In this document: positions 14,875 through 34,200 of the stretch, piece by piece
How the letters are laid out: every line of letters starts with the position of its first letter
Numbering within the stretch: position 1 is the stretch's first letter
Source: Tetramitus jugosus
Lineage: Eukaryota; Protista; Heterolobosea
Length of the DNA: 64,000 nucleotides
Reading direction: 5' to 3'
Assembly: GCA_937625935.1 (NCBI GenBank)
Contig: OW569370.1
Coordinates: 310,001-374,000 of the forward strand
Position numbers and translations under genes: made by a program
Notes under the pieces: generated by a model
Databases searched by the model: none
What the model was told of the DNA's origin: nothing
What the model saw: only the letters and a program-made list of their open reading frames with translations

Positions 14875-16125
14875 ATGTTCGGCAATATCGCTGCAAGGAT
14901 CAAACAAGAAGCTCTGGAAGAAGAAGCACAACAACAAGAGCAACAACAACTTGATCAGCCACAACAAGATGAATTACTTCATGTTGCTGCCATACCATCC
15001 GATCTAGTCAAGCAAGAAGCCGAAGAAGCCGAAGAAGAAGAGCGAGAGATCACAAAGCAAGAAGAAGAAAAATTGATTATAAAAGCAGAAGAAGCAAAAG
15101 AAGAAGAGTCCATTCCCCATTCACCGATTCATTTACAGACAGATGCATCCGATACCATTCTCAAAAAGTTTCATGCGGCGTATGACCTCATTGATGCAAT
15201 GAGAAAGTTGACTGTGGCACCTGTTGATACCATGGGTTGCACATCGACACTGCAAGAAAAGTCAACCAAGGAGCATCGTTTTCAATGCCTCATTTCACTT
15301 GTTTTGTCCAGTCAGACAAAGGATCAAGTTACACATGCAGCCATGAATCGATTGAGACAGCATGGCTGCACTGTGTCAAACTTGTTAAGCAACGAGGCGA
15401 CACCAGAAAAATTGTTGTGCGAGTTGATTTATCCAGTTAGCTTCTATAAGCGGAAGGCTCAGTACATTAAGGATATTTGTCGAGTGTTACACAATCAGTA
15501 CGATGATGATATACCGGATACAGTGGAAGGATTGATGAAATTGAGAGGAGTGGGGCCAAAGATGGCCTATTTGGCAATGTCAGGTGCTTGGATGAACACA
15601 GTTGGCATTGGTGTGGATACACATGTTCATCGTATCTCCAATCGGTTGCCGTGGGTCCACACGAACACTCCAGAGGAAACAAGAAAGCAACTGGAGAGTT
15701 TTGTTCCCAGATCACTGTGGGACCCAGTGAATGTCATGTTAGTTGGCTTTGGACAAACAATATGCAAGCCTGTGGGTCCTCTCTGTGGTCAGTGCAGCCT
15801 CAGAACAGCAAAGTTGTGTGCCTACGGTATTAAGCACTATAATCCAAAAACAGGTAAGGCGAGCACACCATCAAAAATCAAGAATGAGAGTCCAGCGTCA
15901 TCATCGGCTGAAAAGAGGAAACGCAGAGTGAAGAAAGAGAAAGAGTATGAGGAGGATGATGAATCAGAAGATGAAGTAATTCTTAAGAGTGAAGACAGAA
16001 ATGATGACAACGAATACAATTATCCCTTGTCGAACGACATTGAAGATTTAGTTTCTTCGAGTGGTCGTAGAGTAACTCGTGCGGTCTCTAGAAGCTTGAG
16101 TAAACGGGCAAAACAAGAGAGCTAA
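14875..16125 (+). CDS. NTH1: Endonuclease III-like DNA glycosylase/AP lyase
   Basis: LSSQTKD, HhH LRGVGPKMA, GIGVDTHVHRISNRL and a 4Fe-4S Cys cluster (CKPVGPLCGQC...C). Confidence 0.95.
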   Translation: MFGNIAARIKQEALEEEAQQQEQQQLDQPQQDELLHVAAIPSDLVKQEAEEAEEEEREITKQEEEKLIIKAEEAKEEESIPHSPIHLQTDASDTILKKFHAAYDLIDAMRKLTVAPVDTMGCTSTLQEKSTKEHRFQCLISLVLSSQTKDQVTHAAMNRLRQHGCTVSNLLSNEATPEKLLCELIYPVSFYKRKAQYIKDICRVLHNQYDDDIPDTVEGLMKLRGVGPKMAYLAMSGAWMNTVGIGVDTHVHRISNRLPWVHTNTPEETRKQLESFVPRSLWDPVNVMLVGFGQTICKPVGPLCGQCSLRTAKLCAYGIKHYNPKTGKASTPSKIKNESPASSSAEKRKRRVKKEKEYEEDDESEDEVILKSEDRNDDNEYNYPLSNDIEDLVSSSGRRVTRAVSRSLSKRAKQES

Positions 16126-16163
16126 CAGGATACGAGTTTATTCAATCAAATGTGGATTCTGAC

Positions 16164-16451
16164 TTAGGCAGACGAAGTTTTTACGATTGAAGATGTCACA
16201 GATGTGAGCACCCGGAGGCCTAAAGCAAGCAAAATTGTATTCATCGTGTGGGAGTCCTCTGTCGATTCTTCCTCATCTCTATGGAAATTAATCGGTAGTT
16301 CGGGGTCTGTGGAAGCATGGGATTCCGTCCTCCTTCTCTTATTCGAGGAATTTATGTTGTCAGGTTCATTACAAAGTTGCAAAACTATTGCATCCTCACT
16401 GTTATCATCCAAAGCAGAGGGTTGGTCATACTTTCTCTTCAGTTGAGACAT
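16164..16451 (-). CDS. Small hypothetical protein (95 aa)
   Basis: ATG ORF filling an intergenic gap; AC-rich leader; AATAAA on the minus strand just past the stop; basic NLS-like motifs. Confidence 0.5.
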   Translation of the reverse strand: MSQLKRKYDQPSALDDNSEDAIVLQLCNEPDNINSSNKRRRTESHASTDPELPINFHRDEEESTEDSHTMNTILLALGLRVLTSVTSSIVKTSSA

Positions 16452-16822
16452 GACAGATTATTTGGGTTTGTTTCTCTTGTTATTGCTGCTGTTGTTTTCG
16501 GTTGTCCAAGGAGAACCAAAAGTGGTCATCCTCTATCATCATCAAGTCAACCCAATGTTTCTTTTCGAAACTTTTACTCTTGGGCATTGAAGGAGAGGGA
16601 TTGGAATTTCGAACGTTTGAATCTCGACAGCACTTGCCGAAATTAGAGAGGGACATACTGAAGAGCTAAAAATAAGTTGATGAAATCTTTTCTCAGGTTT
16701 CAAGAACGAACAAAAGTTGATGTCAGACAAGAGGTGAGAACAACAAGAAACAACACCATTCTTCGGAGAGAAATTTACACACCACACTTCTGGTTCCAAA
16801 ATATACTAAAAAGTTACACATT

Positions 16823-18286
16823 ATGCGAAGTCCAAGAACTCCGTTGAGCCCGCGCGACCTTACAGTGCGCCTCAACATCTCTGGTCAAATTTTTCAATGC
16901 AGCATGCACACGTTAGCTGCTGAAGATGGCAGCTATTTTTCAAGCTTGGTGAGTTTTCAAGCCATGGCAAACGGATTCCATTGCCAAAGTAGTCAAAAGA
17001 ATCATCACTTGCAACCACCGCCACAGAACCAATATGGTGGTGGTAGTAGCAGTGGTCATAGCAATGGAGCAGGAGTCCAAGAACTTTTTATCGATAGAGA
17101 TCCCACCTACTTTCACTTGATTTTGAATCATTTGAGAGGATATGATATCGCAAACTCGATCGAGCGGTTGAGGGATGACGAACGTGATTTACTGGCGCAA
17201 GACGTTCGTTTTTACAATATTCATTCCATGTTTCGCTACTTTCCACTCATGAGCTGCACCAAAAAATTTGTGGTAGCGTTGGGAGGTCAAGTCAAGGTGT
17301 TTGATGCGAGAACTGGTCGTTGCTTGCACTCCATGGACGCGCATCGCGTCGGTGTCAACATTGTTCGTTCTCCGAGTTGTATTTTGCAACTGTCGGATCA
17401 ACACTTTGTCACGAGCTATAAGAATGAGATGAAATTGTGGGATAGCTTTACAGGTGCTTGTCAATGCTCGTGGTATGACCAATCGGATGACATTACAAAC
17501 TTGTACGCGCTGAATAGTACGTTGTTTGCAAGTCTATCGAGAAATCATGAACTCAAAGTGTACAGTTTACAAACGAGACAGTGCCTGTACTCGCTAGTGA
17601 ATATTCTAGGTATCGTTGTGCTGTCAGACGAACTATTTCTAAGTCAAATGCCCAATGGCTTTATTCACGTGAGGCGGAGTGCGAATAACGAGTTTGTGAG
17701 AACGATTAGTGATGCTCAGGTTTCTTCTTGTATTGTTTCACTCGATGATTGTCGATTTGCTAGTGGCAGTAGTCATTCTGTCAAGATATGGAATGCGATG
17801 AGTGGAGCGTTGGAGGGACAACTATCGGATGTGAATTCATGTTTTGACGATATGACTCGTATGACGAACAATCTTGTGGCAACAAAACATAATCAAGTTG
17901 TTCATCTCTGGAACTTTAAGACACTGACGCGAGAGTACGCCACTCGAAGCTACAGTTGCCCTGGGTTGAGTCAGATTGTTCAGCTAACGGACAATAGCTT
18001 TGTGAGTGTTGGTTGCAGTGCGACGAATGCTCTGTCTTCTCTGTATATCTGGGATATCGCACATGGAAAGTGTTCTCTACCGCATATTAACAAGGGTGGG
18101 TTCACGTTTAAGGATATTGTTCGATTATCGAATGGAGGCTTCGTTATTGTTTGCACAAAGGATGAGGACAATACTGTACGGATAGGTGTTTGGAATCCAT
18201 CATCCGACATCATGTATACTTCAGAAGTTTTATTCGAAAAGACAGATCATCCCTCAGCACACAAGATATCTATCATTTCTTTGTAA
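16823..18286 (+). CDS. KCTD-type BTB/POZ + WD40-repeat protein
   Basis: VRLNISGQIF...FIDRDPTYFHLILNHLR BTB motif followed by degenerate WD repeats (VKVFD, MKLWD, VKIWN). Confidence 0.85.
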   Translation: MRSPRTPLSPRDLTVRLNISGQIFQCSMHTLAAEDGSYFSSLVSFQAMANGFHCQSSQKNHHLQPPPQNQYGGGSSSGHSNGAGVQELFIDRDPTYFHLILNHLRGYDIANSIERLRDDERDLLAQDVRFYNIHSMFRYFPLMSCTKKFVVALGGQVKVFDARTGRCLHSMDAHRVGVNIVRSPSCILQLSDQHFVTSYKNEMKLWDSFTGACQCSWYDQSDDITNLYALNSTLFASLSRNHELKVYSLQTRQCLYSLVNILGIVVLSDELFLSQMPNGFIHVRRSANNEFVRTISDAQVSSCIVSLDDCRFASGSSHSVKIWNAMSGALEGQLSDVNSCFDDMTRMTNNLVATKHNQVVHLWNFKTLTREYATRSYSCPGLSQIVQLTDNSFVSVGCSATNALSSLYIWDIAHGKCSLPHINKGGFTFKDIVRLSNGGFVIVCTKDEDNTVRIGVWNPSSDIMYTSEVLFEKTDHPSAHKISIISL

Positions 18287-18315
18287 ATATGTAAAATTGT
18301 TAGTATTTATTACAC

Positions 18316-19545
18316 TCACTTGGATGTATCAACAATCTTCTGAGTTGCAATGCTCTTGTCGAACAGATCGATGAAATCCTCTCCGAATGCCATGCTTGGG
18401 GTGACGCATCCATAACGATCAACCTCACCTGCCAATACTTTCAAGGTACTCAATATAGCAGATTGTGCAGTGAATTTATAGCCTGGTCCTGCCACTGCTT
18501 CACCTCTAGTACTCTTCTTTCCATCCTTTGACTTGGCAATTGCAACAATTTCTGGAGCAGAAGCGGATGTCTCATCTGGGCCTGGTGGAAGCAAAACCTC
18601 CACCATCTTGTGCAACACTGGCAACAAGAATGGAATCCTGAAGAATAATGACAAAATCCATTGAACAATGAACAAGTTAACAACTGTTCGAACAAATGCT
18701 GGTGCACTAAAAGGGAAATAAACAGTAATGTTAGGAACGCCATCAGTTGAGTAATAAGATGTTGAAACATCGCCCCAACTCACAGCACTGCACTCAACAT
18801 CCTTTCCACTTGGTTCAAAATGGAACTTTTGACACTCAGCAAGCATGTTGACCTTTGTAATGACACCATTTCTTCTGACATGAGTCTTTCCATGATTGAC
18901 AACCATGCCCTCAATCATTGTTTTCAATGTGCCACGAGATACGCCGCTGCCCTCTGGAAATCCGACTGCAATTTGCAATGAATCTGGTGAATTACCCTCG
19001 TGTTGATCACGGTATGCCTTGACAACCTTTCTAGCGAGACAATCGGTTGGAACAACATCGAATCCCACACCAGAAATGATGCAAATCTCTCTCTTTTCTG
19101 CACTGGAATCCATGATGCGATCAGACAAGCTATACTCGAACACGTCAATCTCTCCTGTAATGTCCAAATAGGACACACCAGCACTGACACATGCATCAAT
19201 CATTGGTTTTGCAGTTTGACTGAACGGTCCAGCTGCATTCAACACGGCTCCCACTTTTTGTTCTCTCAGAATTTGTGAGATTTTGGCGACAGACTTTGGA
19301 CCAACAGTAAAGTGAACCGTCTGTTGCTTAAAGTTGAGTTTTTGAGCGAGTTGGGTCACCTTCTTGGAGTCTCTACCACCCAATATCATCATGTCATCTC
19401 TCAACGTGTCATACTTGGAGGCCAATTCAGCAATTAAATTTCCAGTGTAACCTGTGCAGCCGTAGAGCAAGAATCGACCATTGAATTCAGCAGAGGACTT
19501 TCCACACTTCTTGATGAGACGAAGAATCTCTTGTTCAAATGTCAT
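18316..19545 (-). CDS. Saccharopine dehydrogenase-like NAD(P)-dependent oxidoreductase
   Basis: LLYGCTGYTG Rossmann motif, VLNAAGPF, YLDITGE, GVGFDVVPTD, TPSMAFG. Confidence 0.9.
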   Translation of the reverse strand: MTFEQEILRLIKKCGKSSAEFNGRFLLYGCTGYTGNLIAELASKYDTLRDDMMILGGRDSKKVTQLAQKLNFKQQTVHFTVGPKSVAKISQILREQKVGAVLNAAGPFSQTAKPMIDACVSAGVSYLDITGEIDVFEYSLSDRIMDSSAEKREICIISGVGFDVVPTDCLARKVVKAYRDQHEGNSPDSLQIAVGFPEGSGVSRGTLKTMIEGMVVNHGKTHVRRNGVITKVNMLAECQKFHFEPSGKDVECSAVSWGDVSTSYYSTDGVPNITVYFPFSAPAFVRTVVNLFIVQWILSLFFRIPFLLPVLHKMVEVLLPPGPDETSASAPEIVAIAKSKDGKKSTRGEAVAGPGYKFTAQSAILSTLKVLAGEVDRYGCVTPSMAFGEDFIDLFDKSIATQKIVDTSK

Positions 19546-19712
19546 TTGTTGTCAGGTGGATGATTGGATAACGAACGCTTTGTTTCTTTGGGTTTGTTTT
19601 TTCAGGAGATCAATCTTTTATTTTTAGGCAACCTTACGATTCCCCGTCAGAGCGGATCAATAAATATATTATCGGGATAATGGGATCAGGAAAAATGTAC
19701 AGGTGTTGTATT

Positions 19713-21515
19713 CTATGGCGAAGGAGCGAAGAAGAAGCGACCGTCGCTTGAAACCTTGTTGAATCCGGCTGACTGTGGATTGAAAACATACCACATGACT
19801 AACCGAGAAACGAGAACGGAATCCTTTTCATTGTTCGGATCACCATCCTTCTTTAGCAGGCGAACGTTGTCCAACGTGGCCACATAATTCTTGTTCATCA
19901 TATTCCTGAGACACCAGCCCATAGCCATTGCGACATCGGATGGATGGAACAGCTTCGTGTACGATATCTTACCACTCTCTAGATCACTTCTCGAATAGCC
20001 AACCTTGCTCAAGAAGAAATCATTGGCTTGAAGAAGCCCGTTGCTTCCATTGGCCAGAGCCATGCCCATTTGTTCATTGTTGGATGACCATCGACCATCA
20101 CGTATCAACTCACTCAACACCATCTCATGACCCAAGCAAGTGTGCTTTTGTTTCCTCAGTGTGCCTAGTTCACTCTCTAATCGTTGTTTTTGTAGCTTTA
20201 GTGTTTGAACATGCTCTTGCAAGTGTTTCAATCGAATACGTGACAGAATGGGACTCTTTTGTGGAGCTGTCATTGTCGTAGTAGTACTGGATATGGAGTC
20301 ATCCAATGATTCATAGTTGGTAGGTGGTGTAGCACTCTTCTTCTTCTTGCTCTTCTTGCTGCCCCTTGTTGTTTTTGTAGGAGACGTCTTTGATGTAGGT
20401 GTTGTTCTTCTTGCTGCCTTGGTTGGAGTAGTTGTGGTGGTGGCATTCTTTGCTTGATAAGTCTCATCATTGGTCGTCTTGCTGCTTGTTTGCTCAATTG
20501 GGATCGCTGCCTTGTTGACTGTTGTCGTTGACTTGACTGGTAGTCCTATTGTTGGTTGTGGCAATGGAGATGGTGTAAATAGTGAAGTCGATGATGGTGA
20601 TAATGGATCACATGAGAAATGACTATCAAACGAAGTTAGCATCGAATGTTGATCGTGCAATGTCAATGGCGAGAAGGGTGGGAATAGATCACTCAATTGG
20701 AAATAGCCATCTCCACCACCACCATCCAAAAGATTTTCAGTGTTCAAGCTCTCTACTACTTCTTGTGACTCTGTTTCTTCTGGCTGGACATGGTCTTGTC
20801 TTGGTTCAGAGAGCGATGGTTGATTTAGGAAGAATGGCTGTTGCGGCTGTTGCTGTTGCAATGGAACCTTAAAGTATGCTTGTTGTTGTTGTTGATGAGG
20901 AGGAAGCACTTGAGCAGAGGCACTATGATCCAACACGCCCATCACATCTCTCATCTCACCGTTCAACAACAGAAATGGATCACTCATATCCATCATGTTC
21001 ATGGAGCTTTGTATGTGAGGATAAGCCACATTTTTGTTTGTTGCTTGTATGTTGTTGTCGTTGTAACTGTTCGTTACAATGGATAATTTTTGTCGCTTCG
21101 GAGTGGGCTCTTCGGAAGGTACTTGATCAAACATGGAAGGAGGATTATTACTCGTGGGGAAAAGAAGGGTCGACGACGTGGATAAAGTTGTTGACGTCGG
21201 AGAAGCTGTCATTACCATCTGTGGATTATTTTGAGTCAACTGTTGCTGCTGTTGTTGTAGTTGTTGTTGTTGCAGTAATTGTTGTTGTTGTTGCTGTACA
21301 AGTAATTGGTTCTGATAAAATGATGCATCATTCATGTAGTTGTTCAATGGTGGTGGAGGAGGAACGATCAGACCACTCGGAGTTGTTGAAGTAGAGGTAG
21401 TGGTGATAAACAATGGTGGTTGCGAGGAATCGGAAGGAGACAATCTGTTTCTCTTCATATTTGGCTGTTGTGGTTGTTGCTGATAGTGTGGATAATGGGG
21501 TTGGTGTTGCATCAT
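19713..21515 (-). CDS. Gln/Pro-rich putative transcription factor with a leucine zipper and C-terminal PAS domain
   Basis: Leu heptads (LQEHVQTLKLQKQRLESELGTL) followed by PAS-like GLLQANDFFLSKVGYSRSDL...LFHPSD. Confidence 0.7.
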   Translation of the reverse strand: MMQHQPHYPHYQQQPQQPNMKRNRLSPSDSSQPPLFITTTSTSTTPSGLIVPPPPPLNNYMNDASFYQNQLLVQQQQQQLLQQQQLQQQQQQLTQNNPQMVMTASPTSTTLSTSSTLLFPTSNNPPSMFDQVPSEEPTPKRQKLSIVTNSYNDNNIQATNKNVAYPHIQSSMNMMDMSDPFLLLNGEMRDVMGVLDHSASAQVLPPHQQQQQAYFKVPLQQQQPQQPFFLNQPSLSEPRQDHVQPEETESQEVVESLNTENLLDGGGGDGYFQLSDLFPPFSPLTLHDQHSMLTSFDSHFSCDPLSPSSTSLFTPSPLPQPTIGLPVKSTTTVNKAAIPIEQTSSKTTNDETYQAKNATTTTTPTKAARRTTPTSKTSPTKTTRGSKKSKKKKSATPPTNYESLDDSISSTTTTMTAPQKSPILSRIRLKHLQEHVQTLKLQKQRLESELGTLRKQKHTCLGHEMVLSELIRDGRWSSNNEQMGMALANGSNGLLQANDFFLSKVGYSRSDLESGKISYTKLFHPSDVAMAMGWCLRNMMNKNYVATLDNVRLLKKDGDPNNEKDSVLVSRLVMWYVFNPQSAGFNKVSSDGRFFFAPSP

Positions 21516-22137
21516 GTTTGTTGGTTGTTACTTCAAGTAAAAAGAACGGATCTCACGGATAGGATTTTGTTGTTGTTGGAGTCCGGAAACGGGGGAGGTA
21601 CTGTTAATGCGTTCTTTCTTTTGGTTTGCTTGTTTGAAATAAAACAGGTTTTTGGTGAAATTGGACTGTGTGCGCAGATTACTTTTCTCACGTTCTAATG
21701 GCTTTGGAAAAACACGTGTTGGACGCTTTATGCAATTTCCTTTTGTGGACCTAGCGAGGTTAAGATGATGAAGCTTTGGTTGTTGATGTGTGCGGCGGCT
21801 TGTTGTGTTTCGTTGTCTTTGTGTTGGTTGGTGTTGATGAACCAAGATGAATAAAGATAAGTAGAGAGGATGGAAGAGAAGTGTGTGGTTTGGTGAGAGG
21901 TGATGGAAGCAGTTTTTTTTCGAGATTATAAGTTATATTTACGCCGCATCCCCAGGGGGGATTGGCTGTAGCGAACCGATTCGGTGAGCTCTTTTTGTTG
22001 CCTTCTTGCCTGTTTGGGGTGAACTTCTCAAAGTTGGAAAAGTGGTCCGTTGTTCAAAAGCTCGGTGCGCAGTGCGCAAGTCTAAAATGTGGATGATTCC
22101 TGTACTGAGTGAGCTGTTCAGAGCAGATGCTCACTCA

Positions 22138-23634
22138 TCAGAGAGGAGAGAAGCTGCTGTTTAGTTCGTGCGCATCTTCGACTTCCAACAGGAAATCGCA
22201 GATTTCACTAGCGGATGGAGGTCCCATGAGTGATGTTGAGTATTCATCTGATTCCAACAGGTCTACTGTGTGCATGCCTTGCCGTAATTTCTGACACTTT
22301 ACAATCTGTTTGTCTGCTTGTTCAGTGAACCCTGCGCTCACTCGTTTTGCTTGCTTGTAGGCTGTAATTGCTGAATCGTAATCACCACTCTTTCGCTTTA
22401 TGGAACCAAGGGTATCATATACAGAGTAAAGATCAGGATCGTTTTCAGCTGTCCCTATTTCCAATGCCACATTGGCAAACTTTGTTGCTTCTTTGTACTT
22501 TTTCATTTTACAATACGTGTAGGCCAATTGATTGGCGACACCCATGGTCTGTACCGAATTGTATGACTGCAACAGCAATGCAATTGCACTGTCATATGTT
22601 TTCTTTTGTCCGTGAAGATATCCTAACGTGTGCAACAGCCTTGCTTTGTCCTCCTTATTAAAGTTCATGTGCAGAGCTTTTGTTAAACTGTGCAGAGCAA
22701 TGTCGTATTGTGTGGGATCGTTCGCGCCAAGTTCATCCCGTATTGACGCCTCCGTTATATAACCCTCAACGAACATCTCATCCGTCTCCTGTGCCATAAG
22801 GACATACTGTAGTGCATCACTCAAATTTCCCAATATCTGATGCGTCAGTGCGATATCATTGTACGAAATGGCAGATTTCTCCAGTTTGGCCACCTGCACA
22901 AAACACTTCAATTCGGCTTGGTGATCCTCCAATTCATTGCACACACTGGCCTTGCCTCTAAAACTCCGTATCACCGAATCCTTAAAGTCATCTCTTTCCC
23001 GTCTCGATGGCAACTCCTTCCAATACGTGTACTGTTCCTTGATGACTTCATTGTACTCTTCTTTCGCCCCCAAAAAATCACCCTTCAAAAATTTCATCTT
23101 TGCCAAATCGCAGTGCATATCGAGGTACACATGACCATTGTCCTTATCCATATCCATTACCTGTTCAATGATTGAAATGGCATCTGCATACTGTCCCAGC
23201 TGTTCATACGTCAGTGCCAGTGCACTCTGAGCAGTAATATCCGGCTTTGGATTCATCTCAATCACTTTTTCAAAGCATTTCGCAGCTTTTTCATACTCCA
23301 ACTGATTATAGTACGATTGACCCTTTCGAAACACCTCCAAATAGGGCAGATGAGCGGATCGCTTGCCGTCCTTGGGTGTTCGTTTGGCCGTTTTCTTGTT
23401 GCTGCGACGACGTCGAACTGCTGCAACATTCTTTTTTCTTTTCGAACCTTTTTGGTGGTCATCATCGTGATCACTCGTGTCTGTCAGAGCACCAAACATG
23501 ACAGATTGGTTCATTTCATCAACCGGACGGTGATTGTTCTGGTCTTCTTCATAGTCACCGTTGTCATTGTCACTGCTACTGCTACCACTGCTAATTTCTT
23601 GGTAGGATCGCTTCTTGTCAACGTTGTTTTCCAT
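22138..23634 (-). CDS. TPR-repeat protein
   Basis: Multiple TPR consensus units (GQSYYNQLEYEKAAKCFEKVIEMNP; LGSIKRKSGDYDSAITAYKQA); basic NLS. Confidence 0.88.
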   Translation of the reverse strand: MENNVDKKRSYQEISSGSSSSDNDNGDYEEDQNNHRPVDEMNQSVMFGALTDTSDHDDDHQKGSKRKKNVAAVRRRRSNKKTAKRTPKDGKRSAHLPYLEVFRKGQSYYNQLEYEKAAKCFEKVIEMNPKPDITAQSALALTYEQLGQYADAISIIEQVMDMDKDNGHVYLDMHCDLAKMKFLKGDFLGAKEEYNEVIKEQYTYWKELPSRRERDDFKDSVIRSFRGKASVCNELEDHQAELKCFVQVAKLEKSAISYNDIALTHQILGNLSDALQYVLMAQETDEMFVEGYITEASIRDELGANDPTQYDIALHSLTKALHMNFNKEDKARLLHTLGYLHGQKKTYDSAIALLLQSYNSVQTMGVANQLAYTYCKMKKYKEATKFANVALEIGTAENDPDLYSVYDTLGSIKRKSGDYDSAITAYKQAKRVSAGFTEQADKQIVKCQKLRQGMHTVDLLESDEYSTSLMGPPSASEICDFLLEVEDAHELNSSFSPL

Positions 23635-23800
23635 TTGTGTTGGTTGTGAATTTCTTCAACGATAAGATCTTATTTTCTGTGTGAGGCGGGAATTTTGGTG
23701 AAGTTGCTGGATCACTTCAGAGAAGTCACAGTGAACAACAGGTGGATGTTATTATGCACAAAATAAATAAACACACTCGAGAGTTTTCACAGGACACCTC

Positions 23801-25576
23801 CTACGATTTGGACACTGCTTGTCCAATTGCCTTTTCCCATTCATCAGCCTTACCAGACACGTCCTCTAGTACATAGACACGCTTAGGAGTGGAGATGTAA
23901 AAGTGACGATCTGATTTTTTGTCTACACGAATGTCTTTTGACCAGGGTACTTGTCCCTTGAGCTTCATGGTGCTTGGATCTACATAGAGCAACCGATGCT
24001 TGTCCGTGAGGATTAGTTGTCTTGTTTTCGCAGTCATTCTACTTCTCTTGATCACGGACGACGTGTACAGAATCTTTTCGCCACTGATCAGGAACCTTCT
24101 CCACTGTGATGCATCGCTCACATTCTTCCTAGTGCTGGTTGCAAAGCGAGTGCTGCTCTTACTGATACCGTTGCTCATGGATATATCAGCCAATTGTTCG
24201 CTTCTGACACTATGGGGCACGATCCTAGGCGGTATCATTTCATTCAATTTACAAAAGTCGATACCATTGAAGAACGGATGTTGTTTCAGCTCGGCATAAC
24301 CACCTGCCCTAGCACCTAATCTCTCCTCTGGGGCCAACCGTAGCAAATTATCGACCAAATCTCGGGCCACTTCAGGAAAGCTCGATGGAAACTCAAAGTC
24401 ACGACTCAAAATTCTCTTAAACGTCAAATACTCACTGTCCGCCTTAAATGGATAATTGCCTGTTAGGAATTGATAGACAATGCAACCTAGAGCCCACAGA
24501 TCCGTTGCTTTCGAAGGCATTTGATTCGTGAGCACTTCTGGTGAGACGTACTCTGCTGTGCCACAAAACGTCTGGCGAGATCTCTTCAACAAATCTGACA
24601 CTTCAATCCCATCGGCCTCATCCTGCGTCAACACTTTTGCCGTTCCAAAATCCGTAATCTTCGTGTGCATGTCCTTCCCCAGAATCAGATTCTCCGGTTT
24701 CAAATCTCGATGGATAATGTTCATTGAGTGCATGTACTCTAGTCCATTGACAATTTCTGCAGTGTAGAAAATGGCGGCCTCCAACGAAAAGGGACCATAT
24801 TTGCTAATGTAGGAAAACAGTTCACCACCAGGCGCCAACTCCAATGCAAAATCTTTTTTTGTGCGTGTTAGCTCACAGTGATCAACAAGACAAGAGAGAC
24901 ACTGAAAAAAAAAAATGAGAGTAGCCTCAATCAACAAACAAGACCACTCACATATAACCTAACAACATAAAAACACAAGACACACAAAATAAAAAATGGC
25001 GGCATTATCCTATCTCTCTCTCTCATGATATATATACATACACAAATTTTCCTTATCTTGAAAAGTACAAAACAGACGAATAATATTGGGATGATTCATC
25101 ATATTCAACACATCTCTCTCCATCTTGACCGTCTTTAGCTTATTCTGACTAATGATTTGTTGTTTGAGAATCACTTTTGTAGCATAACGTTTTCCAGTGG
25201 GTTTAAAAATGGATTTGACGACACGAGAGTACGCTCCTTCACCCAACACTTCTCCAAACTCAAAATCTTCTCTAGAGTAGGGCCGTTTACTGTTGGCCCC
25301 ATTACTCGTAGCTTTTGATCGTTGTTTTTGTTGTTGTTGATTGGTTGATGTTTTACTATTGTTATTTTTCGTAGTGTTATCATCATCTTTATTTTTACTG
25401 TTATTATGATTATTGTTGCTACAATTGTTACTACTGTACACTTCATCACCAATACAAGTCATGGAGTTGGAGAAGGGAATACTGGAGAGGAGAGGTGAGG
25501 AACGAGGAGTTGTCGGTGTCGATGTTGATGACGATAGAGAGGACGTTGATGAAGCAGAAGATGATAGTGAGGACAT
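23801..25576 (-). CDS. PDPK1: 3-phosphoinositide-dependent protein kinase 1, 2 exons (25576-25042, 24852-23801)
   Basis: LGEGAYS, HRDLKPEN, DFGTAK, TFCGTAEYVSPE and a PDK1-type C-terminal PH domain (RQLILTD...LYVDP...KGQVPW); the splice gives ENLYFALE. Confidence 0.93.
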
Positions 25577-25755
25577 TTTTTTTTTGGTTTTTTGTTGTTG
25601 ATAATCGAGTCGTTGTTGGTTTTTGAGAGCTAAAATCCCGAAGTTCCAATCAAGGCAATTTGCCAAGGCTGGTCAAATCAATTGAGTGAGTGATAGCGAA
25701 AGAGTCGTTTCGCGATGGCCTAAATTTCTTGTGTGTGAATTTATTGAAGAGCTCA

Positions 25756-27099
25756 TTATTGGTTCAGGTTGTCAAGCAGTGAGAATGCAAGAACGCTGGA
25801 ATCGTCAGAGCATGAGAACAAGAGAGATTTGGACTTCATGATACTCAATACAATGTCTCTGTGGCCCTTGAAAACCTTGATTGGTGACGATGTTCTCACA
25901 TCCCAGACACAAACCGTCTTGTCAACACTGCAACTGTACAAGAGTGGTTGATCTTCATCAAAGAACACCTTTGTAACACCGTCATTGTGCTTGAATGTTT
26001 GTCTCAGACTCAACGTACTCACGTCCCACAGATTGATCCTATTGTCCATACCACCGGTTGCCATGAGTGGAGCAACAGGAACACCAGCTTTGAATGCACT
26101 CATATCAATGGTTTCAATTGATTCTTCATGGCCACGCAACACACCCAATGTCTTCTTGTGAGTAATGTGAGACAATTGTGCAGTACCGTCTTCAGCTGCA
26201 GTCAAGATCAAATTTGGTTCTTGCTTTTGACTGGCGAATGCAGTGATGGGTGCAGTGGTAAACATGATTTCATTGGGTTGGAACACGTGAACACATTCGG
26301 CCGTGACTGGATTCCACACACGGACACTAGCGTCTTCTGAACCAGTGACCAATAGCTTACCGTCCGATGTGAAACCACCAGTGGTCACAGATCCCGAATG
26401 ACCAGAGAACACATTGAGACAAGACTGTGTCTTCACATTCCACAACCAAGCAGTCGTGTCTGCACTACCACATGCAAGCAAATTTCCCTTTGGATGCCAC
26501 TGAATCCATTCAATTGACTCGGATGGACCATCCAAGAACAATTCACTCACCACATTGTTCATATCACTGACATTCCACACACCAATTGTACCGTCCATGG
26601 ATCCAGTAGCCAACTTTGTTCCATCATAATTGAACGAAACATCGACACAAGTGTCCTTGTGACCCAACAAGTGTCTCACATTGGAGATTTGATTGTTGGT
26701 TGTGTCGTACTGGAAGATGAAACCAGTGTCATCTCCACTCGCAGTAGCAATCAACAGTGAGTCATCACTCTTTTCAAATTTGGCAATCTTGTACACACTG
26801 TCCGTATGTTTTGTAAACTCTGCAATGGAATCATTGGGGCCATCATAATTTTCCCGATCTCCGCCCATGGTTTCATCATCTTCGTATTCTTCGTCGTCGT
26901 CGTCATCATCACCTTCGACTCCTTCTCCATCTTCTTCATCAAACTTTGCCTTCAAAAAATCATCCATGTCCATCACAATTTGATCTTCAATGTCATTTGG
27001 GTCCATGAACTCTGCTTCTTCTTGATCATTGATTTCTCCATTGTCAAATTGGTTGTCTTCTTCTTCGTTTTCTCTAAAGTTTTGGTTACTGCTGCTCAT
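25756..27099 (-). CDS. SQT1: WD40 protein of the SQT1/AAMP family (uL16 chaperone)
   Basis: Acidic N-terminus plus WD repeats with family-type ATASGDD, LDGPSESIEWIQWHPKGN and FSGHSGSVT. Confidence 0.8.
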   Translation of the reverse strand: MSSSNQNFRENEEEDNQFDNGEINDQEEAEFMDPNDIEDQIVMDMDDFLKAKFDEEDGEGVEGDDDDDDEEYEDDETMGGDRENYDGPNDSIAEFTKHTDSVYKIAKFEKSDDSLLIATASGDDTGFIFQYDTTNNQISNVRHLLGHKDTCVDVSFNYDGTKLATGSMDGTIGVWNVSDMNNVVSELFLDGPSESIEWIQWHPKGNLLACGSADTTAWLWNVKTQSCLNVFSGHSGSVTTGGFTSDGKLLVTGSEDASVRVWNPVTAECVHVFQPNEIMFTTAPITAFASQKQEPNLILTAAEDGTAQLSHITHKKTLGVLRGHEESIETIDMSAFKAGVPVAPLMATGGMDNRINLWDVSTLSLRQTFKHNDGVTKVFFDEDQPLLYSCSVDKTVCVWDVRTSSPIKVFKGHRDIVLSIMKSKSLLFSCSDDSSVLAFSLLDNLNQ

Positions 27100-27268
27100 G
27101 GTTTTTAGGATTAGTCAGTATCTAGTTGTTGTTGTTGCTGTCGTTGTTTTGTGGAAGTGTGAATTTCATGTTTCTTTTTTCCCCGATGGGTTCAACGAGC
27201 AATTTGATATTTGAAGCATCAATCGTTTGGTTGAATGAAATTATCCGCATTGTATTTGGAATGTTTGA

Positions 27269-27604
27269 TCATTGATTCAATCCTCTTCTTTTGTTGCAGC
27301 TGTTCATGTGCACGAGGAGACGATCTGGTTCAAATCGACGAGAACAACCTGGACATTGAGCCATGGATTGCTTGTAAATCTCGTAGGCTTGCTTGTTCCA
27401 CTCCTGAATATCTTTGGCTGTGCTCTCAGAGGTGGGTAGAGGAAGAGATGGTGCTTCTGGGATTGGTTTTTGTAATTCCTCTGGTAGCAATCTCCAGTAG
27501 ATCTCTCTCTTGGTGGGACAATCCTTCAAGTGAATAGGAAGACTGGCAGATCCATATTCCTGACCACAACAATAGCAGACAATCATCTTTCGTTGCTGAT
27601 AGCC
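27269..27604 (-). pseudogene. Paired C2HC zinc-finger unit (ZNF474-like); probably a 3' gene fragment
   Basis: CYCCGQEYGSASLPIHLKDC and CPGCSRRFEPDRLLVHMNSC; its 5' side runs straight into VPS35-derived sequence with no room for a promoter. Confidence 0.6.
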
Positions 27605-27615
27605 TCTCCATTGGG

Positions 27616-28825
27616 ATTGAATTTTTCGTCGACCAATGATTTAGCATTGCTAGTCAATTGAATAGCACTGCACTTGCTTCAGATGAAATTGTAGACATGT
27701 TGAAGCGATTGTTGTTGGTGCCACTCGAGTCATACAACAATGTGCTAACAGTTTTGAAGTTGGAGAAGTATGGTGATATTATTCATTCTCTTGGATATGA
27801 ACAGAGAAAGTTTATTGCACTGAGCATTGTGAGATGCGCACTTGACAATGGACACAAGATTTCAACATTTGAACAAGTGAACAAACTGTTTGATTTGATT
27901 CGTCCACTGTTGAAGGATGAGGAAGACCAGACAACATTCTCACCTTCTGACGACTCACCAATAGCTGCAACATTGCTCGAAGATTTCGAAGAAGAACTTG
28001 ATTGCCAGATTGGTTCATTTGTTTGATAATAGCGATACTGATCAATTGTTTAAAGTTTTGGCCGCAGCCAGAAAGCACTTTGGTCAGGGTGGTGTCAAGA
28101 GAATTCAATACACATTGGTACCGCTTGTATTCTCCTACTTGAAACTTGCTCAGAGAATCTACAATGCACAGGAGGAGGAAAAGGTGATCAATGTAGACAA
28201 GGTGTTCAAGTATGTACTCGAAATTTTGCAGGTTTATGCCAACCACAGACCAAGTGTCGCCTTGACACTCTATCTCCAAAGTGCTCAATGTGCTGATCAA
28301 TGCGCCTCTGATCAAATCGTGTACGAATTCCTGACACAGGCATTCATGATCTATGAAGAGGAAGACAGCAAGATTCAATTGAATTATTTGACCTTGATCA
28401 TCAACACGCTGCAAAATATGAAGAATATGACTCGCGAAAACTATGACACATTGTCCACAAAGACCTGCCAATACTCATCCAAGCTATTGAGGAAGCCTGA
28501 TCAGTGCAGAGCTGCCTTCACTTGCTCTCATCTGTTCTGGCCGTTCGTGAATAACGAAGAGCTTCAGAACAGTTCAAAGGCACTTGAATGCTTGCAATGG
28601 TCGTTGAAGATTGTCAAGGCATGCATGCCTGCACAACAAATTCCATTGTTTGTTGACATTTTGAACGTGTACGCTTATCACTTTGACAAGGACAATGACA
28701 AGGTGACTGCCGAGTACATTAACGGTCTCATTGATCTAATCGCTGACAATATCTCAAAGATTGAAGAAGAGGAGACTCCTGATGATGTCTTTGCACCAAC
28801 CAATGCCGAGATTGCTATTTACTAA
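27616..28825 (+). pseudogene. VPS35: Retromer subunit VPS35, C-terminal-half fragment with an in-frame stop and a frameshift
   Basis: LLLVPLESY, ARKHFGQGGVKRIQYTL, KLLRKPDQCRA, CSHLFW, ALECLQ motifs; TGA at 27637-27639 after FVDQ; frameshift near 28000; N-terminal half absent; ends abruptly at IAIY*. Confidence 0.85.
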
Positions 28826-28950
28826 CCAAATCTAGAGAATAAACTTCTTCACTCAACAAGAGGAACAGACTCGCTCTCTCAGCACTCAACAACTTGCCAA
28901 CACCAGAGATCAAATGCTGCAAATAGACACCTCTTGTCGACTCTCCATCT
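28815..28950 (-). pseudogene. Short fragment resembling the start of a GAF domain
   Basis: ISGVGKLLSAERASLFLLLSEEVYS resembles the GAF pattern LLxA(D/E)RxSLFL; the nearby ATG (28948) is out of frame. Confidence 0.4.
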
Positions 28951-29229
28951 TTTTTGATTGATTTGGTTGTTGTTGTTGTTGTTGATGTTCGTTGTGCGAC
29001 TTGTGTTTTTCGTTGTTGTTGTCGTGTCAGAGAGAAAGTTTTTCGTTGGTTCAAGATTGGATAGATAGGTGGATATATTATAAAAAAATACAATAAATGT
29101 TGTATCAGTTTCCTCTAAGCTGCGGAATTGGTGCAGTTGTAACAATTTCCGTTGAGACTGTCTTTACAACGGCAACGGCCATCTACCTCGGTTTAAAAAG
29201 CGCTGTCTTTTTCGCTGTTTGATTCAACT

Positions 29230-29277
29230 CACACAACAAATACAACACACAACAAATACACCACACAACAAATACAA
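29230..29277 (+). repeat. 3 x 16-bp tandem repeat CACACAACAAATACA(A/C) in the Fanzor leader
   Basis: Units at 29230-29245, 29246-29261 and 29262-29277. Confidence 0.9.
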
Positions 29278-29284
29278 TAACATT

Positions 29285-31105
29285 ATGCCACGAGGCGTGC
29301 CGAAGGACGGCAAGAGAAAGAGAAAGAGAGAGACTGTCAAAAAGAATGAATACTCATCACATTACGTGGTCAAAATCGGTTTGAAATCCTTGTTGTTGCA
29401 TCATCCAACTCTGTTACCAATCATACAAACTCAAGCTCTGGAGATTACAAGGATTGCTCTTAGAATCACTCGATTCATAAATGTGTTCGTGTTGAGATAC
29501 TTGGAGAACGATTGCAACATTCCTCCATTGGATCAAGGATTTATTCAACGGATTGTCTCTGTCTTGTTTGGACCAAAATCAGAAACAAGAGACGGTAATG
29601 TTGCCCTTGCCAATGAATCTGTTAATATGGATGATGTCATAGTCAAACTCAGAAAGCTTTATGAGAATTTTTCCACATCCATCAATTACGTTGCAAAGTC
29701 TCTCAGGGTCAACATCTCCAACATGCTCAAGTTCACGCTTGAACAAAGACTGAGAAAGTATCTGATAGTCAGAATGAGTCAATTGTGTTCGGATCCATCT
29801 ATCCCAAGATCCGAATACAGAAGGGTCGTTGAATACATTATCAGAAGGTTGACATTCAAAACTCCAGTCTATGACTTCATCAAACTGCCTCCAAGGGGGT
29901 TGATTGAAGTCATTCCTGTATTAATTCATGAGATCAAAACACTTGCTGCTGTTGGAACCGATGAAGTTATTGATGAATCTTTTGTGGATAACAACACTAA
30001 CAATATGCTGAAGTTTTACTGGCATGTACAACAATTTCTGACATATCCAAATAGAAGAAAGAAAAATGACATTCGTGAACCGATAGAATTCAAATACAAT
30101 CTGAAGTGTTTGAACACCGGCGAAAAGAAGATTCAGATTGATTCTATCAGAACTGACGGTATTCAAGCCTCTGTTGTTGTCAGACATCAACTCATTGGCA
30201 ATCACAAGAACAATAAGGCAGAGAAATCTAAAGGCGAGAAACAAGCAAAGAAGATGAAGAAAGAAACAACTATTGTTGATCAATATGCAGATTACTTGAT
30301 TGGTATCGATCCTGGTATTGTCACATTGATGAGTTGTGCTGATTCAGATGGTAAAAAGTGGGAGTTCTCCAATAAGGCATACAGACGACTGTCTCATCAT
30401 TCACAGAACGCCAAACGTTTGTTGAAATACAAAGCAAAATGGAACACGAAAACTGGAAAAGATTTAGATGAACTCCATAACTCGATCAAACAAGCCAGTG
30501 TATCGACAAGTGATCTGTTTATCGAACACATTGATTCTGTTTTGAAAGTCGAAGATGACTTGCTTGGTTTTTATTGCACTCCAAAGGTGAAGAGACTGAA
30601 TTGGGACAGCTATATTATGAGAGACAAAACAATTGCTGGAGTAATGAATGATTTTCACAAAAGAGCAAATGGAAGAAAGATGGTCATTGGCATGGGCAAT
30701 GCTGGTTTCAAAAATAGTTACAGAGGACATGCTTCAACGCCCAAGGGCAAACTGTTGAAGAAACTGAATGAACGATTTGAAGTGAAAATGATTGACGAAT
30801 TCATGACCAGCCAAAAATGTTGTGCTTGCCATTCCCATTTGAAGCCAGTCAAGCACAAACGAATGGACAAGAAAGGTGTATCAGCAATCTCTATTGTACG
30901 AGGAGTTAAACAGTGTGCAACCACTAAATGTTTAGTGACTCACAACAGAGGCATCAATGCGGCCAAGAACATGCTCCATCTACTGAGAACAGAAATGGAT
31001 GGACAGTCACGTCCCGATGCCTTCAAGAGGAAGAAAAAGGTCGCAAAAGAATTAATCAAAATGGTGGAACACCTCCAAGGCTCACTCCATCAAGCTGCTA
31101 TGTAA
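29285..31105 (+). CDS. Fanzor (eukaryotic TnpB-family RNA-guided nuclease), Fanzor1-like, 606 aa, RuvC-III Asp replaced by Gly
   Basis: N-terminal NLS and VVKIGLKSLL; IRTDGIQASV; RuvC-I LIGIDPG; VIGMGNAGF; rearranged RuvC-II IDEFMTSQKCCAC; second Cys pair CATTKC; RuvC-III HNRGINAAKNM; intronless. Confidence 0.88.
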   Translation: MPRGVPKDGKRKRKRETVKKNEYSSHYVVKIGLKSLLLHHPTLLPIIQTQALEITRIALRITRFINVFVLRYLENDCNIPPLDQGFIQRIVSVLFGPKSETRDGNVALANESVNMDDVIVKLRKLYENFSTSINYVAKSLRVNISNMLKFTLEQRLRKYLIVRMSQLCSDPSIPRSEYRRVVEYIIRRLTFKTPVYDFIKLPPRGLIEVIPVLIHEIKTLAAVGTDEVIDESFVDNNTNNMLKFYWHVQQFLTYPNRRKKNDIREPIEFKYNLKCLNTGEKKIQIDSIRTDGIQASVVVRHQLIGNHKNNKAEKSKGEKQAKKMKKETTIVDQYADYLIGIDPGIVTLMSCADSDGKKWEFSNKAYRRLSHHSQNAKRLLKYKAKWNTKTGKDLDELHNSIKQASVSTSDLFIEHIDSVLKVEDDLLGFYCTPKVKRLNWDSYIMRDKTIAGVMNDFHKRANGRKMVIGMGNAGFKNSYRGHASTPKGKLLKKLNERFEVKMIDEFMTSQKCCACHSHLKPVKHKRMDKKGVSAISIVRGVKQCATTKCLVTHNRGINAAKNMLHLLRTEMDGQSRPDAFKRKKKVAKELIKMVEHLQGSLHQAAM

Positions 31106-31205
31106 ATCCCGATTATGTAGGAGCGTTAAGGTGTCTTATCGGGAAACCATAATGTTTTTATTATGGCTTACAGTAGACCGCCACCTTAATACTTTGTAAA
31201 ACCAG
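31098..31205 (+). ncRNA. Predicted Fanzor omegaRNA (scaffold ~31098-31189, guide from ~31190)
   Basis: Stems TCCCGAT/ATCGGGA and CCATAAT/ATTATGG, closing TGTAA/TTACA, and an 8-bp loop-to-3'-end pairing TTAAGGTG/CACCTTAA, immediately 3' of the Fanzor ORF. Confidence 0.65.
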
Positions 31206-34200
31206 GATAGAATGACATTCCTGCTTTCCATTCAGCAATTAGAGCTGGCAACACTTCAGGTTCTCTCATTTCGAATGACTCCTTCTCAGTTTCAGAGAGA
31301 CAGTTTTCTGGTACTGAAGTACTCGTGGCGTTATCCATAGCTCCATGTCTCTGTGATAGATACTGAATGATCATTCTTCGACAATTTTGGCTTGACAGCA
31401 GCAGATAGTTCTCAAAGAAGTGCAATAGATCACTCTTCTTCAATGTGGCCAATGCTTCTAACTTTCGCTCGGCTCTATCAAAGAGATATTGTCTTGCCAT
31501 AACTTCTCTCCAGAATCTAACTGCTTCATCCTTCAAATGCTTATCCTTTTCTTCAATCGTAGCTCTCAAACCACTGATATGGGTGCTAATTTCCTCATCG
31601 CTTGTTTGCTCCAAAACGTCATAAAATTGTTGCATGAAGAGATCAATTCTACCCTGAATGAACTGTGGTGTCTTTGTATCAGATTGGATGATAAAAGAAA
31701 GGGAGTTAATGTTATTATCTCGTCTGGCTCTTGAAAACACTAGATAACCGAGTTGTTCCACAGTTCTCAACTGTGAGTAGAATGGAGTGGAGATAATTTG
31801 AGCCAAAAGATCCAAAATAACATCCTGTTGAATGTTTCTCAATCCAATTTGATAAATAACCTCGATAGCAGAGTTCTCGTTCTGGTTTGGAACTGGTTTT
31901 TGAACAAGATAATCCTTTCCTTCCTCAAGCTTAACAATTCGTTCCATGGGTATTTGAGATGGCAATGGTTCTCTGTGCTTGAATTTACGATTGTTACGCT
32001 CTCCAAATAAGATATCTTCGGTTTTATCAGCCAAATTGAGTGCTTCAGCTTCGTTCATATTTCCAATCATTAAAAACTCAGCTTTCAAACACAATAAATA
32101 TTGAGGCACAAAATCGCTCAGCATTTCGAACGTGATATCACCAATGACATGTGCATATTGATCGTAAGTCCACTTTGATAAGTATGTACTTTCAAAACTT
32201 GTGATCAATACGTGCTCATATGGTTGATTTTGAGCCATGTTATTATATTGTTCAGTCAAATCATTCTTGAGCACTTCGAATCTGCTGCGCTCAAAGCTAT
32301 GATCAGCAAACTTTTCAAACACAATGTGATTGAGCTCAACAATTCTGTCATTGTAGCCACTCAAATAAATAGTGAATCCTGTTACGCTGGACTGAATATC
32401 ATAGTAGACACCGGCCATCTCTGCTTCATATGCAATTTCATTCAACTGATCGGCAACTAACATTGACAACAACTTGCTCAAAACTACAACTCTTGGTGAG
32501 GTATATGACTCAGGAATGATCAAGTTGTAAAAGATGTTAACCTTTGGTTGCTTGAAGACATAATCTTGCTTAAACCAAAGTTTCACTTTGCCATTGTCTC
32601 TGAGTAGCGAAGGGAAAGGGTTTCGCTCTTCAACTTGCTTGATTGCAAAACTTTGCGGAATGAATGGATTTGGACGTACAAGCTTCACTGCAGCAGGTTC
32701 TCCAACATGTTCTCCCTTTGCCCAGTTTGTAATTAGTTCAGCTTCAATATCAGATTTTGAATATTTGATCTTGTACCACTTTTCTTCCTCTGTTCCTTCT
32801 TCTTCGTGTCCTTGACTGGCAAAGTATATGTTCATATTTGAAGGAACTATATAATTTAGATAATCATTGAGAACATCTGGAGAGTAATCAAATGAAAGGA
32901 AGCTGGCACTCATAACCTTATCGGCTGGATACTTTTGCATATTGCCTGCCAATCTACTGATGTAATCTGGATCAGATCGCTTGTCCATGTATTGGAATTG
33001 AGCAAGAGACAAGTTGGCTGTCTCATCGAAAATGTGTTTCTGTGGTCCTGCTTCTCTCAACAACTTTAGGTATTCAAACACTGAAGAAACAACCTTTTTC
33101 CACTGCTTTTCACCTTCGCTGGTCATTCTCATGCTGATCATAAAGAGTTGATATCCATTAAATTGGTGGGCAACACCGGCAGCGAACGAATAGAGGAGAC
33201 CCAGACCCTTCAAATAAGAAAATAGTGATCCTTCTCCTTCGTGTCCAAGATAATGGGAATAATAACGATCTGGTTTGATCATCCAATTCACTGTTGTATC
33301 ATCGATACGAATTGGAAATATAAGTGTCATCTCCTTCGTGTCCTTGATTGGTACATACTTGTAAAACTTGGTCAGTTCACTCGGAGTGAACACCTTCTGT
33401 TCCACATACTCCAAACTCGGAAGTGGAACATTCATGTTTTTGACTTGCGAGAAGGATTCACTGACCCAGGAAACAAGTGTCTCAATGGAATGATTGGACG
33501 ATATGACCAATCGCATCAAATTAGCCGAATAATACTTGGAATGAAACTTGATCAACTCATCTCGAATGTTCAACGAATTTTCAGTTGGAATCCGATCCAG
33601 AGTCTCCAAATTACCAGTACCAAACTTGTGGAACGGATGAGATGAATTGCACGATGTTTTCACGAGTTGAAACCTTCGCCACATGTCCTGTGGAATATTC
33701 TTTGAGTGTTCACTCTCAATCGCCATCATTTCTCTTGCCGTAGCATCCTGAGTGAACAATGGAGCAATAAAGAATTGTGCAAATCGATCCAGTCCCTCTT
33801 TAAATGCATCATTGGCCACATTGAAGTGATAATTGGTGGACTCCATATCCGTAAATGCATTTGTGTCTCCACCATTCATCTTTACACTAAAACAAACAAC
33901 AAACCATGTCAATTACAAAAAAATCAACAAATCATGATTACAAAAAACACCACAAAACTTGTTTCTTACAATTTTTGATAAGATCCTTCTTCAGGATACT
34001 TTTCTGTGCCTAAAAACAACATGTGTTCACAAAAATGAGCCAAACCAGCGATACCCTCAGGATCATTCAAATGACCCACATTGATGTCCATTGCTGCAGT
34101 GCTTTTTTCAGCACTCTTATCACTGATCAAAAGCACAGGCAATTGGTTCGTTTCAAGTTCATAGTAATGATAAATTCTATCATCTGTGATTGGTTTTTGA

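Follow-up and report, generated by a model that had tools for sequence, protein, structure and literature searches.

A probably inactive member of a Fanzor1-carrying transposon family with TTAA ends in the heterolobosean Tetramitus jugosus

A stretch of 64,000 nucleotides from the protist Tetramitus jugosus (positions 310,001 to 374,000 of contig OW569370.1, assembly GCA_937625935.1; hereafter the window) contains an open reading frame that a sequence-only reading had taken for a Fanzor1-like protein with its cognate RNA, set in a housekeeping region and forming a eukaryotic RNA-guided system. We asked whether this locus encodes a working RNA-guided nuclease and how it came to lie where it does. 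What stands of the earlier claim is a Fanzor1 gene with a predicted right-end RNA. The window copy itself is very likely not a working nuclease, and in our judgement it is with good probability a decayed copy within a family of Fanzor1-bearing DNA transposons that move by cut and paste and are non-autonomous.

The open reading frame (29285..31105, plus strand) encodes 606 aa and, by a reading-frame check of the window, is intronless and stop-free, as had been claimed. Motif and alignment checks located the RuvC-I Asp (D342, codon 30308, motif GIDPG), the Gly of VIGMGN (G471, codon 30695) and the relocated Glu (E505, codon 30797) at the positions given for them, E505 lying seven residues ahead of the first Cys (C512) of an intact CxxC/CxxxxC zinc finger. 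The VVKxxL and IxTDG motifs are also present, the latter as IRTDG. A relocated Glu before the zinc finger with an upstream Gly defines Fanzors (PMC13565253, PMC3627910), and the window protein has its RuvC-II Glu and its Gly in just this arrangement. Its Pfam match is to Cas12f1-like_TNB (E 6e-8), and its sole significant PDB sequence match is SpuFz1 (E 7.6e-13). Upstream lies a core region found in nearly all copies (29105..29284, plus strand; 24-copy comparison), presumed to contain the Fanzor promoter and an AC-rich leader, in which 29105-29254 is 97-100% identical across all 24 copies compared and a 16-bp repeat occurs three times (29230-29277).

A search of the genome (26.35 Mb) for further copies returned 92 protein matches, about 25 of them near-full, and copy anatomy was read from 60 fetched loci. 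A WD40 protein encoded by the host has Acrasis kona and Naegleria fowleri as its top named matches, which fits a heterolobosean amoeba. The closest sister of the window copy discussed here, C48, is 98.2% identical to it over the core. Its intact, 92%-identical protein was modelled with AF2 (pLDDT 91) and stands in for the window protein in all statements on fold. Foldseek matched this model to SpuFz1 (E 1.7e-24, TM 0.69), PpFz1 (4e-19) and GtFz1 (2e-15), as against 5e-5 (TM 0.24) for Fanzor2 and 3e-5 for TnpB; the modelled REC/WED/RuvC/TNB fold is nearest the solved Fanzor1s, above Fanzor2 and TnpB. Profile searches gave 8e-93 for Fanzor1 vs 2.5e-10 for Fanzor2. Motifs, profiles and model together support assignment of the family to Fanzor1, and the earlier preference for Fanzor1 over Fanzor2 was borne out. 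A Fanzor2 or IS607-like identity was rejected on the length of full-length members (628-649 aa), the presence of terminal inverted repeats (TIRs) and TTAA, and a weak ApmFz2 match. To call the family uncharacterised was fair: the solved Fanzor1s are 14-18% identical to it, and its closest matches in the databases are metagenome proteins without a name (55-82% identity), relatives this close being seen in metagenome contigs only. In 19 of 21 long ORFs rebuilt from the fetched loci, D-E-D is complete and the WED motif is present. Between subfamilies dN/dS is 0.14 at dS about 1, and the nuclease is therefore under selection in the family.

Conservation among copies ends at ...CC-TTAA. Complete copies start with TTAA-GG... 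and have TIRs of 13-16 bp, of two types, that enclose 2.2-4.6 kb and are bordered by TTAA on both sides; 26 of the 27 right ends examined finish in TTAA, and the termini are GG...CC in both types. This is a Fanzor1 gene in a eukaryotic TIR/TTAA transposon without a serine recombinase. The window copy retains a right TIR of type 1, ending ...CGCCACC (31173..31185, plus strand), which is an exact inverted match to the left ends of complete sisters (e.g. C4:104060), and behind it the right copy of the TTAA target-site duplication (31186..31189), identified by copy comparison. No left TIR, left TTAA or variable target-site duplication was found in the left flank. One copy (C24:244713, L025), which is without RuvC-III, is the only one with C before the left TTAA and also the only one with a damaged right TTAA.

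No element copy contains a transposase. The genome's matches to PF13843 (12) and PF13359 (29) lie off these TIRs, and a search with PF20700, which we take as a proxy for the Kolobok transposase, gave 0 candidates, its control also giving no match. None was found beside the relatives in metagenome or viral contigs; a TIR pattern scan of the viral contigs gave 11 scattered single matches, taken as chance. Several of the genome's 12 piggyBac-type and 29 Harbinger/ISL2EU-type DDE matches occur in identical multiples. A piggyBac identity was rejected, the termini being GG...CC and none of the 12 piggyBac-type matches lying at these TIRs. Kolobok, a superfamily known from Naegleria, has as its published signature a TTAA duplication combined with 5'-RR...YY-3' termini (PMC9587614); it is missing from the Fanzor hosts listed in a 2026 review (PMC13565253). 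The element carries this signature, with no Kolobok transposase or KolX found here, and Kolobok is the candidate superfamily; the call is made from the ends because no transposase occurs in any copy or is tied to these ends, whose TTAA/GG...CC letters are readable also as a TA duplication with AGG...CCT ends.

The type-1 end accompanies relatives at 75% and 55% identity, the type-2 end a relative at 41%. Another, conserved right end without TTAA or TIR goes with relatives at 60% (59-69% for L061, L063 and L100). Fanzor and scaffold therefore move between transposon ends, these three loci marking a host-element switch within the clade. The type-2 TIRs at C32:2808-4989 enclose a divergent Fanzor (35-44%), probably the one to which this type of end first belonged. 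TIR matches with no nearby Fanzor occur at C10:247203, C24:126315, C11:254181, C25:365140, C47:119538 and C15:15258; these six are candidate ghost loci or candidates for an autonomous element.

The housekeeping surroundings did not hold up on the upstream side, where VPS35 sequence from 27642 onward belongs to the mobile element: 22000-27641 is single-copy, and the sequence is multi-copy from 27642. The cargo begins with captured VPS35 sequence, the 3' half of the gene together with its 3' flank (27642..28834, plus strand), 99% identical to the full-length native gene at C22:81999-84539 and present in parts in more than 20 element copies. It is followed by two captured pieces of one C11 host gene (28835..29083, minus strand), which point away from Fanzor and were recognised by sequence match: an internal fragment (28835-28943; 99% to C11:503912-504020) and a segment (28945-29083; 88% to C11:502404-502547) presumed from its position and the abundant cargo RNA to be the promoter and 5' leader of that gene. 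A leftward ATG near 28948 was considered as the start of a lost transposase and rejected, this being host DNA from C11.

On the left the element abuts a single-copy host gene (27269..27626, minus strand) with an IQ motif and two C2HC zinc fingers, identified from Pfam (zf-C2HC_2, E 6e-15; the IQ match is weak), copy number and the contigs of other samples. Its 5' side is cut off and its frame runs into the junction. As cargo this gene was rejected, since it is single-copy in the genome. Host alleles from two other samples match up to 27626 only and then differ, with 424 letters in X2 and 732 letters followed by VPS35 28281-28805 in X1. The host match ends at 27626 and the element match begins at 27642-27645, leaving about 18 nt of filler (27627..27644), for which no source was found. 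Because the host gene is 5'-truncated and the alleles diverge at 27626, we conclude that one deletion took the left TIR, the element start and some host DNA, and left the filler. The X1 contig that links the zinc-finger gene through its 732 letters to the cargo at 28281 is possibly a differently truncated allele of the insertion.

On the right lies a host insulinase (peptidase M16) gene (31186..33912, minus strand; Pfam and RNA contig 31170-32500), whose transcript, by that contig, extends into the right end of the element. Its ORF ends at 31186 and was undamaged by the insertion because the TTAA at 31186-31189 contains its stop codon. In another copy (C19:168k, L021) the TTAA likewise falls on a stop codon, here that of a long ORF converging on the element. 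The right junction is filled in two further samples, one DNA and one RNA, and no empty allele of the insertion site was seen in the contigs of other samples. One X1 flank contig begins 6 nt inside the right end (31184) and may represent a second allele, empty or with a type-2 end.

RNA depths were taken from assembled contigs of a poly(A) library (oligo-dT, X14) and are rough and unstranded. Summed depth over the cargo at 27645-28170 is 15,000-25,000 vs 224 for the rest of VPS35, the cargo part common to most copies being about 100-fold deeper than the remaining VPS35, and the element-only joint 28170-28917 reaches 4,700. The Fanzor ORF is almost without poly(A) RNA (depth 0-3), which rules out DNA carry-over as the source of the cargo RNA. 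The captured C11 leader points leftwards, and the cargo RNA may be antisense to VPS35, an essential trafficking gene.

The sequence-only reading had placed a structured RNA of about 90 nt directly after the ORF. Folded alone, 31098-31205 is no better than shuffles (z -1.35), whereas a segment that begins inside the ORF, 31056-31189, has z -2.0, and those of four relatives have -2.8 to -6.4. The predicted omegaRNA scaffold (31061..31189, plus strand; RNAfold on window and relatives with pair counts, the 5' end also predicted) consists of a hairpin within the ORF (31061-31090), a hairpin over the stop codon (31099-31119) whose loop (31107-31113) can pair with 31138-31144, and a terminal stem of 31126-31133 with 31182-31189 around an inner hairpin (31147-31166). 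Three RNA domains are common to the window and its relatives, with a long stem closed by pairing of TIR and TTAA with an internal TTAAGG; inclusion of TIR and target-site duplication in a Fanzor1 RNA scaffold has been described earlier (PMC10711439). In an alignment of eight related sequences 93.7% of cells are paired, with four pairs changed on both sides, vs 36-48% for slid controls; this we count as supportive only, because the sequences are few and related. The 7-nt loop and its partner at 31138-31144 covary in relatives (CCCGA/UCGGG, CCCAA/UUGGG, CUAAA/UUUAG), cognate helices being 5-7 bp vs 2-4 across groups (shuffle p 0.0006 to 0.2), and the 41% relative has 3 bp only. This predicted contact is internal, in contrast to the guide-adjacent pseudoknot of TnpB, and Fanzor1 RNAs have been reported without a pseudoknot. 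An Rfam search gave nothing relevant.

The right end is thus conserved and structured through TIR and target-site duplication and then passes into variable flank, as expected of Fanzor1. The predicted guide (31190..31204, plus strand) is host flank antisense to the last insulinase codons, placed there because copy conservation stops after TTAA and given a length of ~15 nt after PMC10711439. A 215-nt contig of the poly(A) library spans 30930-31144. From fold and alignment, a cognate right-end RNA is supported.

The life cycle that we propose for the family builds on what was read directly (the element family, its ends, cargo and copy number, the Fanzor1 fold, purifying selection and the lesions of the window copy) and draws its mechanism from known Fanzor1 biology, the tested Fanzor1s (PMC10432273) serving as analogy. 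A transposase encoded elsewhere would insert and excise intact copies at TTAA. Transcription of the right end would yield an omegaRNA with TIR and TTAA in its scaffold and, as guide, the ~15 nt of host sequence that follow. On the empty allele, Fanzor would cut downstream of a TAM that contains TTAA. Repair from the filled allele or a sister copy would restore the element (restorative homing, shown so far for bacterial TnpB/IscB only; PMC13565253), and incomplete, template-switching repair would produce left-truncated copies, chimeric copies and captured host pieces. The window omegaRNA still folds in prediction and could load on the protein of sisters.

Copies without a left TIR number about 8, vs about 2 without a right one. 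Three sisters truncated on the left have retained the TTAA and between 1 and 9 bases of the target: at the C48 left junction, 13 nt (TTAA plus target bases) with a 3-nt microhomology are joined about 43 nt inside the element, and C38 and C2:592k have 5 nt each (TTAA plus target base). Chlamydomonas CRe elements show a like pattern, which was reported without an explanation (PMC3627910). Identity to the window copy is 98-99% at both core ends in all copies but 56-85% inside, and four copies switch subfamily near 30200-30300. By analogy with TnpB and IscB, we infer that truncation bias, junction scars and chimeric interiors are consistent with Fanzor-driven homing. The left junction of the window copy, a deletion with filler and without TTAA-plus-target duplication, is not specific to homing, because aborted excision or any break could make it. 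At C2:613k (L048), the fetched locus opens, at its left edge, on 10 nt identical to the right flank, followed by about 130 nt of unrelated sequence and then the element, perhaps a fourth duplication with captured filler.

Gap repair after excision and ectopic conversion are established for P and Ac/Ds elements. The most serious competing explanation accepts the same family and decay, overlaps our own in all but the homing step, and has these processes, following ordinary excision, generate truncations and chimeras without any Fanzor cutting. Internal deletions, fillers and the window junction are all accounted for in this way; duplications of TTAA plus right-flank target bases, the excess of left over right truncations and selection on the nuclease do not readily follow from it. 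We consider it the less probable account, though one with an appreciable chance of being right.

The base before the left TTAA (T7 A3 C1) differs somewhat from that after the right TTAA (G12 T7 A6 C1; Fisher two-sided 0.057). This hints weakly at a TAM that does not accept C, and such a TAM would leave the filled right end uncut. A joint reading, which we put forward tentatively and as rather unlikely to be right in every part, is that this is the first Kolobok-borne Fanzor1, that eukaryotic Fanzor homing has left its natural record in the scars and the end-homogenised chimeras, that a C-rejecting TAM avoids self-cutting at CC-TTAA-target, that dead copies supply guides in trans, and that a pseudoknot forms inside the omegaRNA. 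With about 19 Fanzor1 genes that are intact, divergent (63-99%) and have guides that can be read, all within a single small protist genome, the sister set offers a tractable test of whether Fanzors really home in eukaryotes, and the family is a candidate new transposon host and a source of candidate TTAA-TAM nucleases.

Among known systems, SpuFz1 of Spizellomyces punctatus (PMC10432273; PDB 8GKH, 9CEY) shares the fold (TM 0.69) and D-E-D layout, and its element Spu-1 is also a multi-copy TIR element without transposase, with a right-end omegaRNA and many partial copies. Spu-1 has 30-nt inverted repeats, whereas the present family has two types of TIR, of 13-16 bp, with TTAA at the ends, is 18% identical to SpuFz1, carries host-gene cargo and has a longer predicted RNA that begins in the ORF; the third Asp is moreover missing from the window copy. 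GtFz1 of Guillardia theta (PMC11423790; PDB 9CER) uses the TTAA TAM that the family ends predict here, and has a long multi-stem omegaRNA with tertiary loop contacts such as we predict, at 15% identity. The CRe-1,2,3 Fanzor1 elements of Chlamydomonas (PMC3627910) are alike in frequent 5' truncation with intact 3' ends, in variable-length duplications from the target tetranucleotide and in short extra sequence at the 5' junction, but they are Helitron-type with introns, and the elements here are TIR elements with fixed TTAA duplications. The insect-virus elements HVav-1 and SFav-1 (PMC3627910, PMC10711439) resemble ours in short TIRs, 4-bp duplications starting with TT, lack of a transposase, and TIR and target-site duplication within the RNA scaffold, as predicted here; they are viral, with TTAN and no cargo described, whereas ours have strict TTAA and cargo.

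The lesions of the window copy bear on the question of function. A RuvC-III region had been noted earlier, but its catalytic Asp is absent: the motif reads HNRG, with Gly at aa 556 through a private A-to-G change at 30951. The motif is HNRD in 19 of the 20 other long genome copies (the 20th has the region deleted), and Asp occupies this position in 114/114 ungapped rows of a 117-homologue alignment. The window protein therefore has RG after the zinc finger where 19 sisters complete the triad with RD. The ORF is uninterrupted in frame, but relative to the C48 sister it has a 105-bp in-frame deletion (35 aa) after 30040, at codon 252-253. The stretch so missing from WED is ungapped in 96-100% of the 117 rows, with P262 in 112, and comprises the F-x-L-x-P and I-x-I motifs, one strand and one helix in the AF2 model of the sister; the WED domain is not intact, and the protein has 606 aa vs the 628-649 of full-length members. 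Among the 21 long ORFs, only that of the window copy has the Gly and the WED deletion. Further lesions are a private frameshift through loss of 5 bp at 27992, a deletion of 63 bp near 28803 and a private 5-nt deletion after 31169, which spreads the damage over cargo, ORF and RNA; the other copies in the same assembly are clean of such lesions. The 105-, 63- and first 5-bp deletions terminate in 3-5 nt microhomologies. Judged from these letters, the window copy is Fanzor1-derived and not an intact Fanzor1 nuclease. It probably neither cuts nor is excised, because a catalytic residue, part of WED and the left TIR are lost, and we hold with high confidence that it belongs genuinely to the Fanzor1 family but is decayed, immobilised and probably inactive. 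As a pseudogenising member it is a poor choice for assays, for which its sisters are more worthwhile.

It seems improbable that faulty assembly produced the lesions and that the true allele is undamaged, though some of the lesions may be errors of this kind. Contigs of X1, X2, X5 and X14 carry undeleted forms at 27992, 30041 and 31169, and among the contigs listed none bridges a deleted form; these contigs, however, consist mainly of sister-copy sequence, from strains about 1% different in the flanking genes, while the microhomologies resemble those of real repair deletions and the other copies in the assembly are clean. Domestication as a nuclease-dead, TldR-like RNA-guided regulator of the insulinase gene is very unlikely: catalytic loss, an open frame, immobilisation, a guide matching the insulinase 3' end and an insertion common to other samples would suit it, but the lesions are private to the assembly and scattered, a comparison with the closest sister beyond aa 90 gives a dN/dS of 0.69 from 11 changes, DNA recognition should suffer from the WED deletion, and the target is a gene end and not a promoter. 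The marks of such a regulator, catalytic loss conserved under purifying selection and a promoter target, are not seen here. Hardly to be credited either is a compact Fanzor1 that remains active with an unusual residue in third catalytic position; the frame is open with D342, E505 and the zinc finger intact, and the RuvC-III position is not absolutely fixed, since GtFz1 functions with Asn there (PMC11423790), but Gly has no side chain, the Asp and the deleted WED segment are kept by the homologues as given above, both changes are private, and the ORF has almost no poly(A) RNA.

We retain the reading of the window copy as a decayed transposon member and add two minor observations. At 26906-27124, an allele found in three runs has 22 other letters in place of 217 bp around the start of a WD40 gene. 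A 154-aa ORF, absent from the window copy, occurs inside these elements only (L052:128-592, minus strand; C26:154.9-155.4k; about 20 sisters); it has no host source in the genome and gives weak F-box, CCCH-finger and chromo-like signals, and its Atlas neighbours are giant-virus proteins (score 0.78), which we treat as a lead only.
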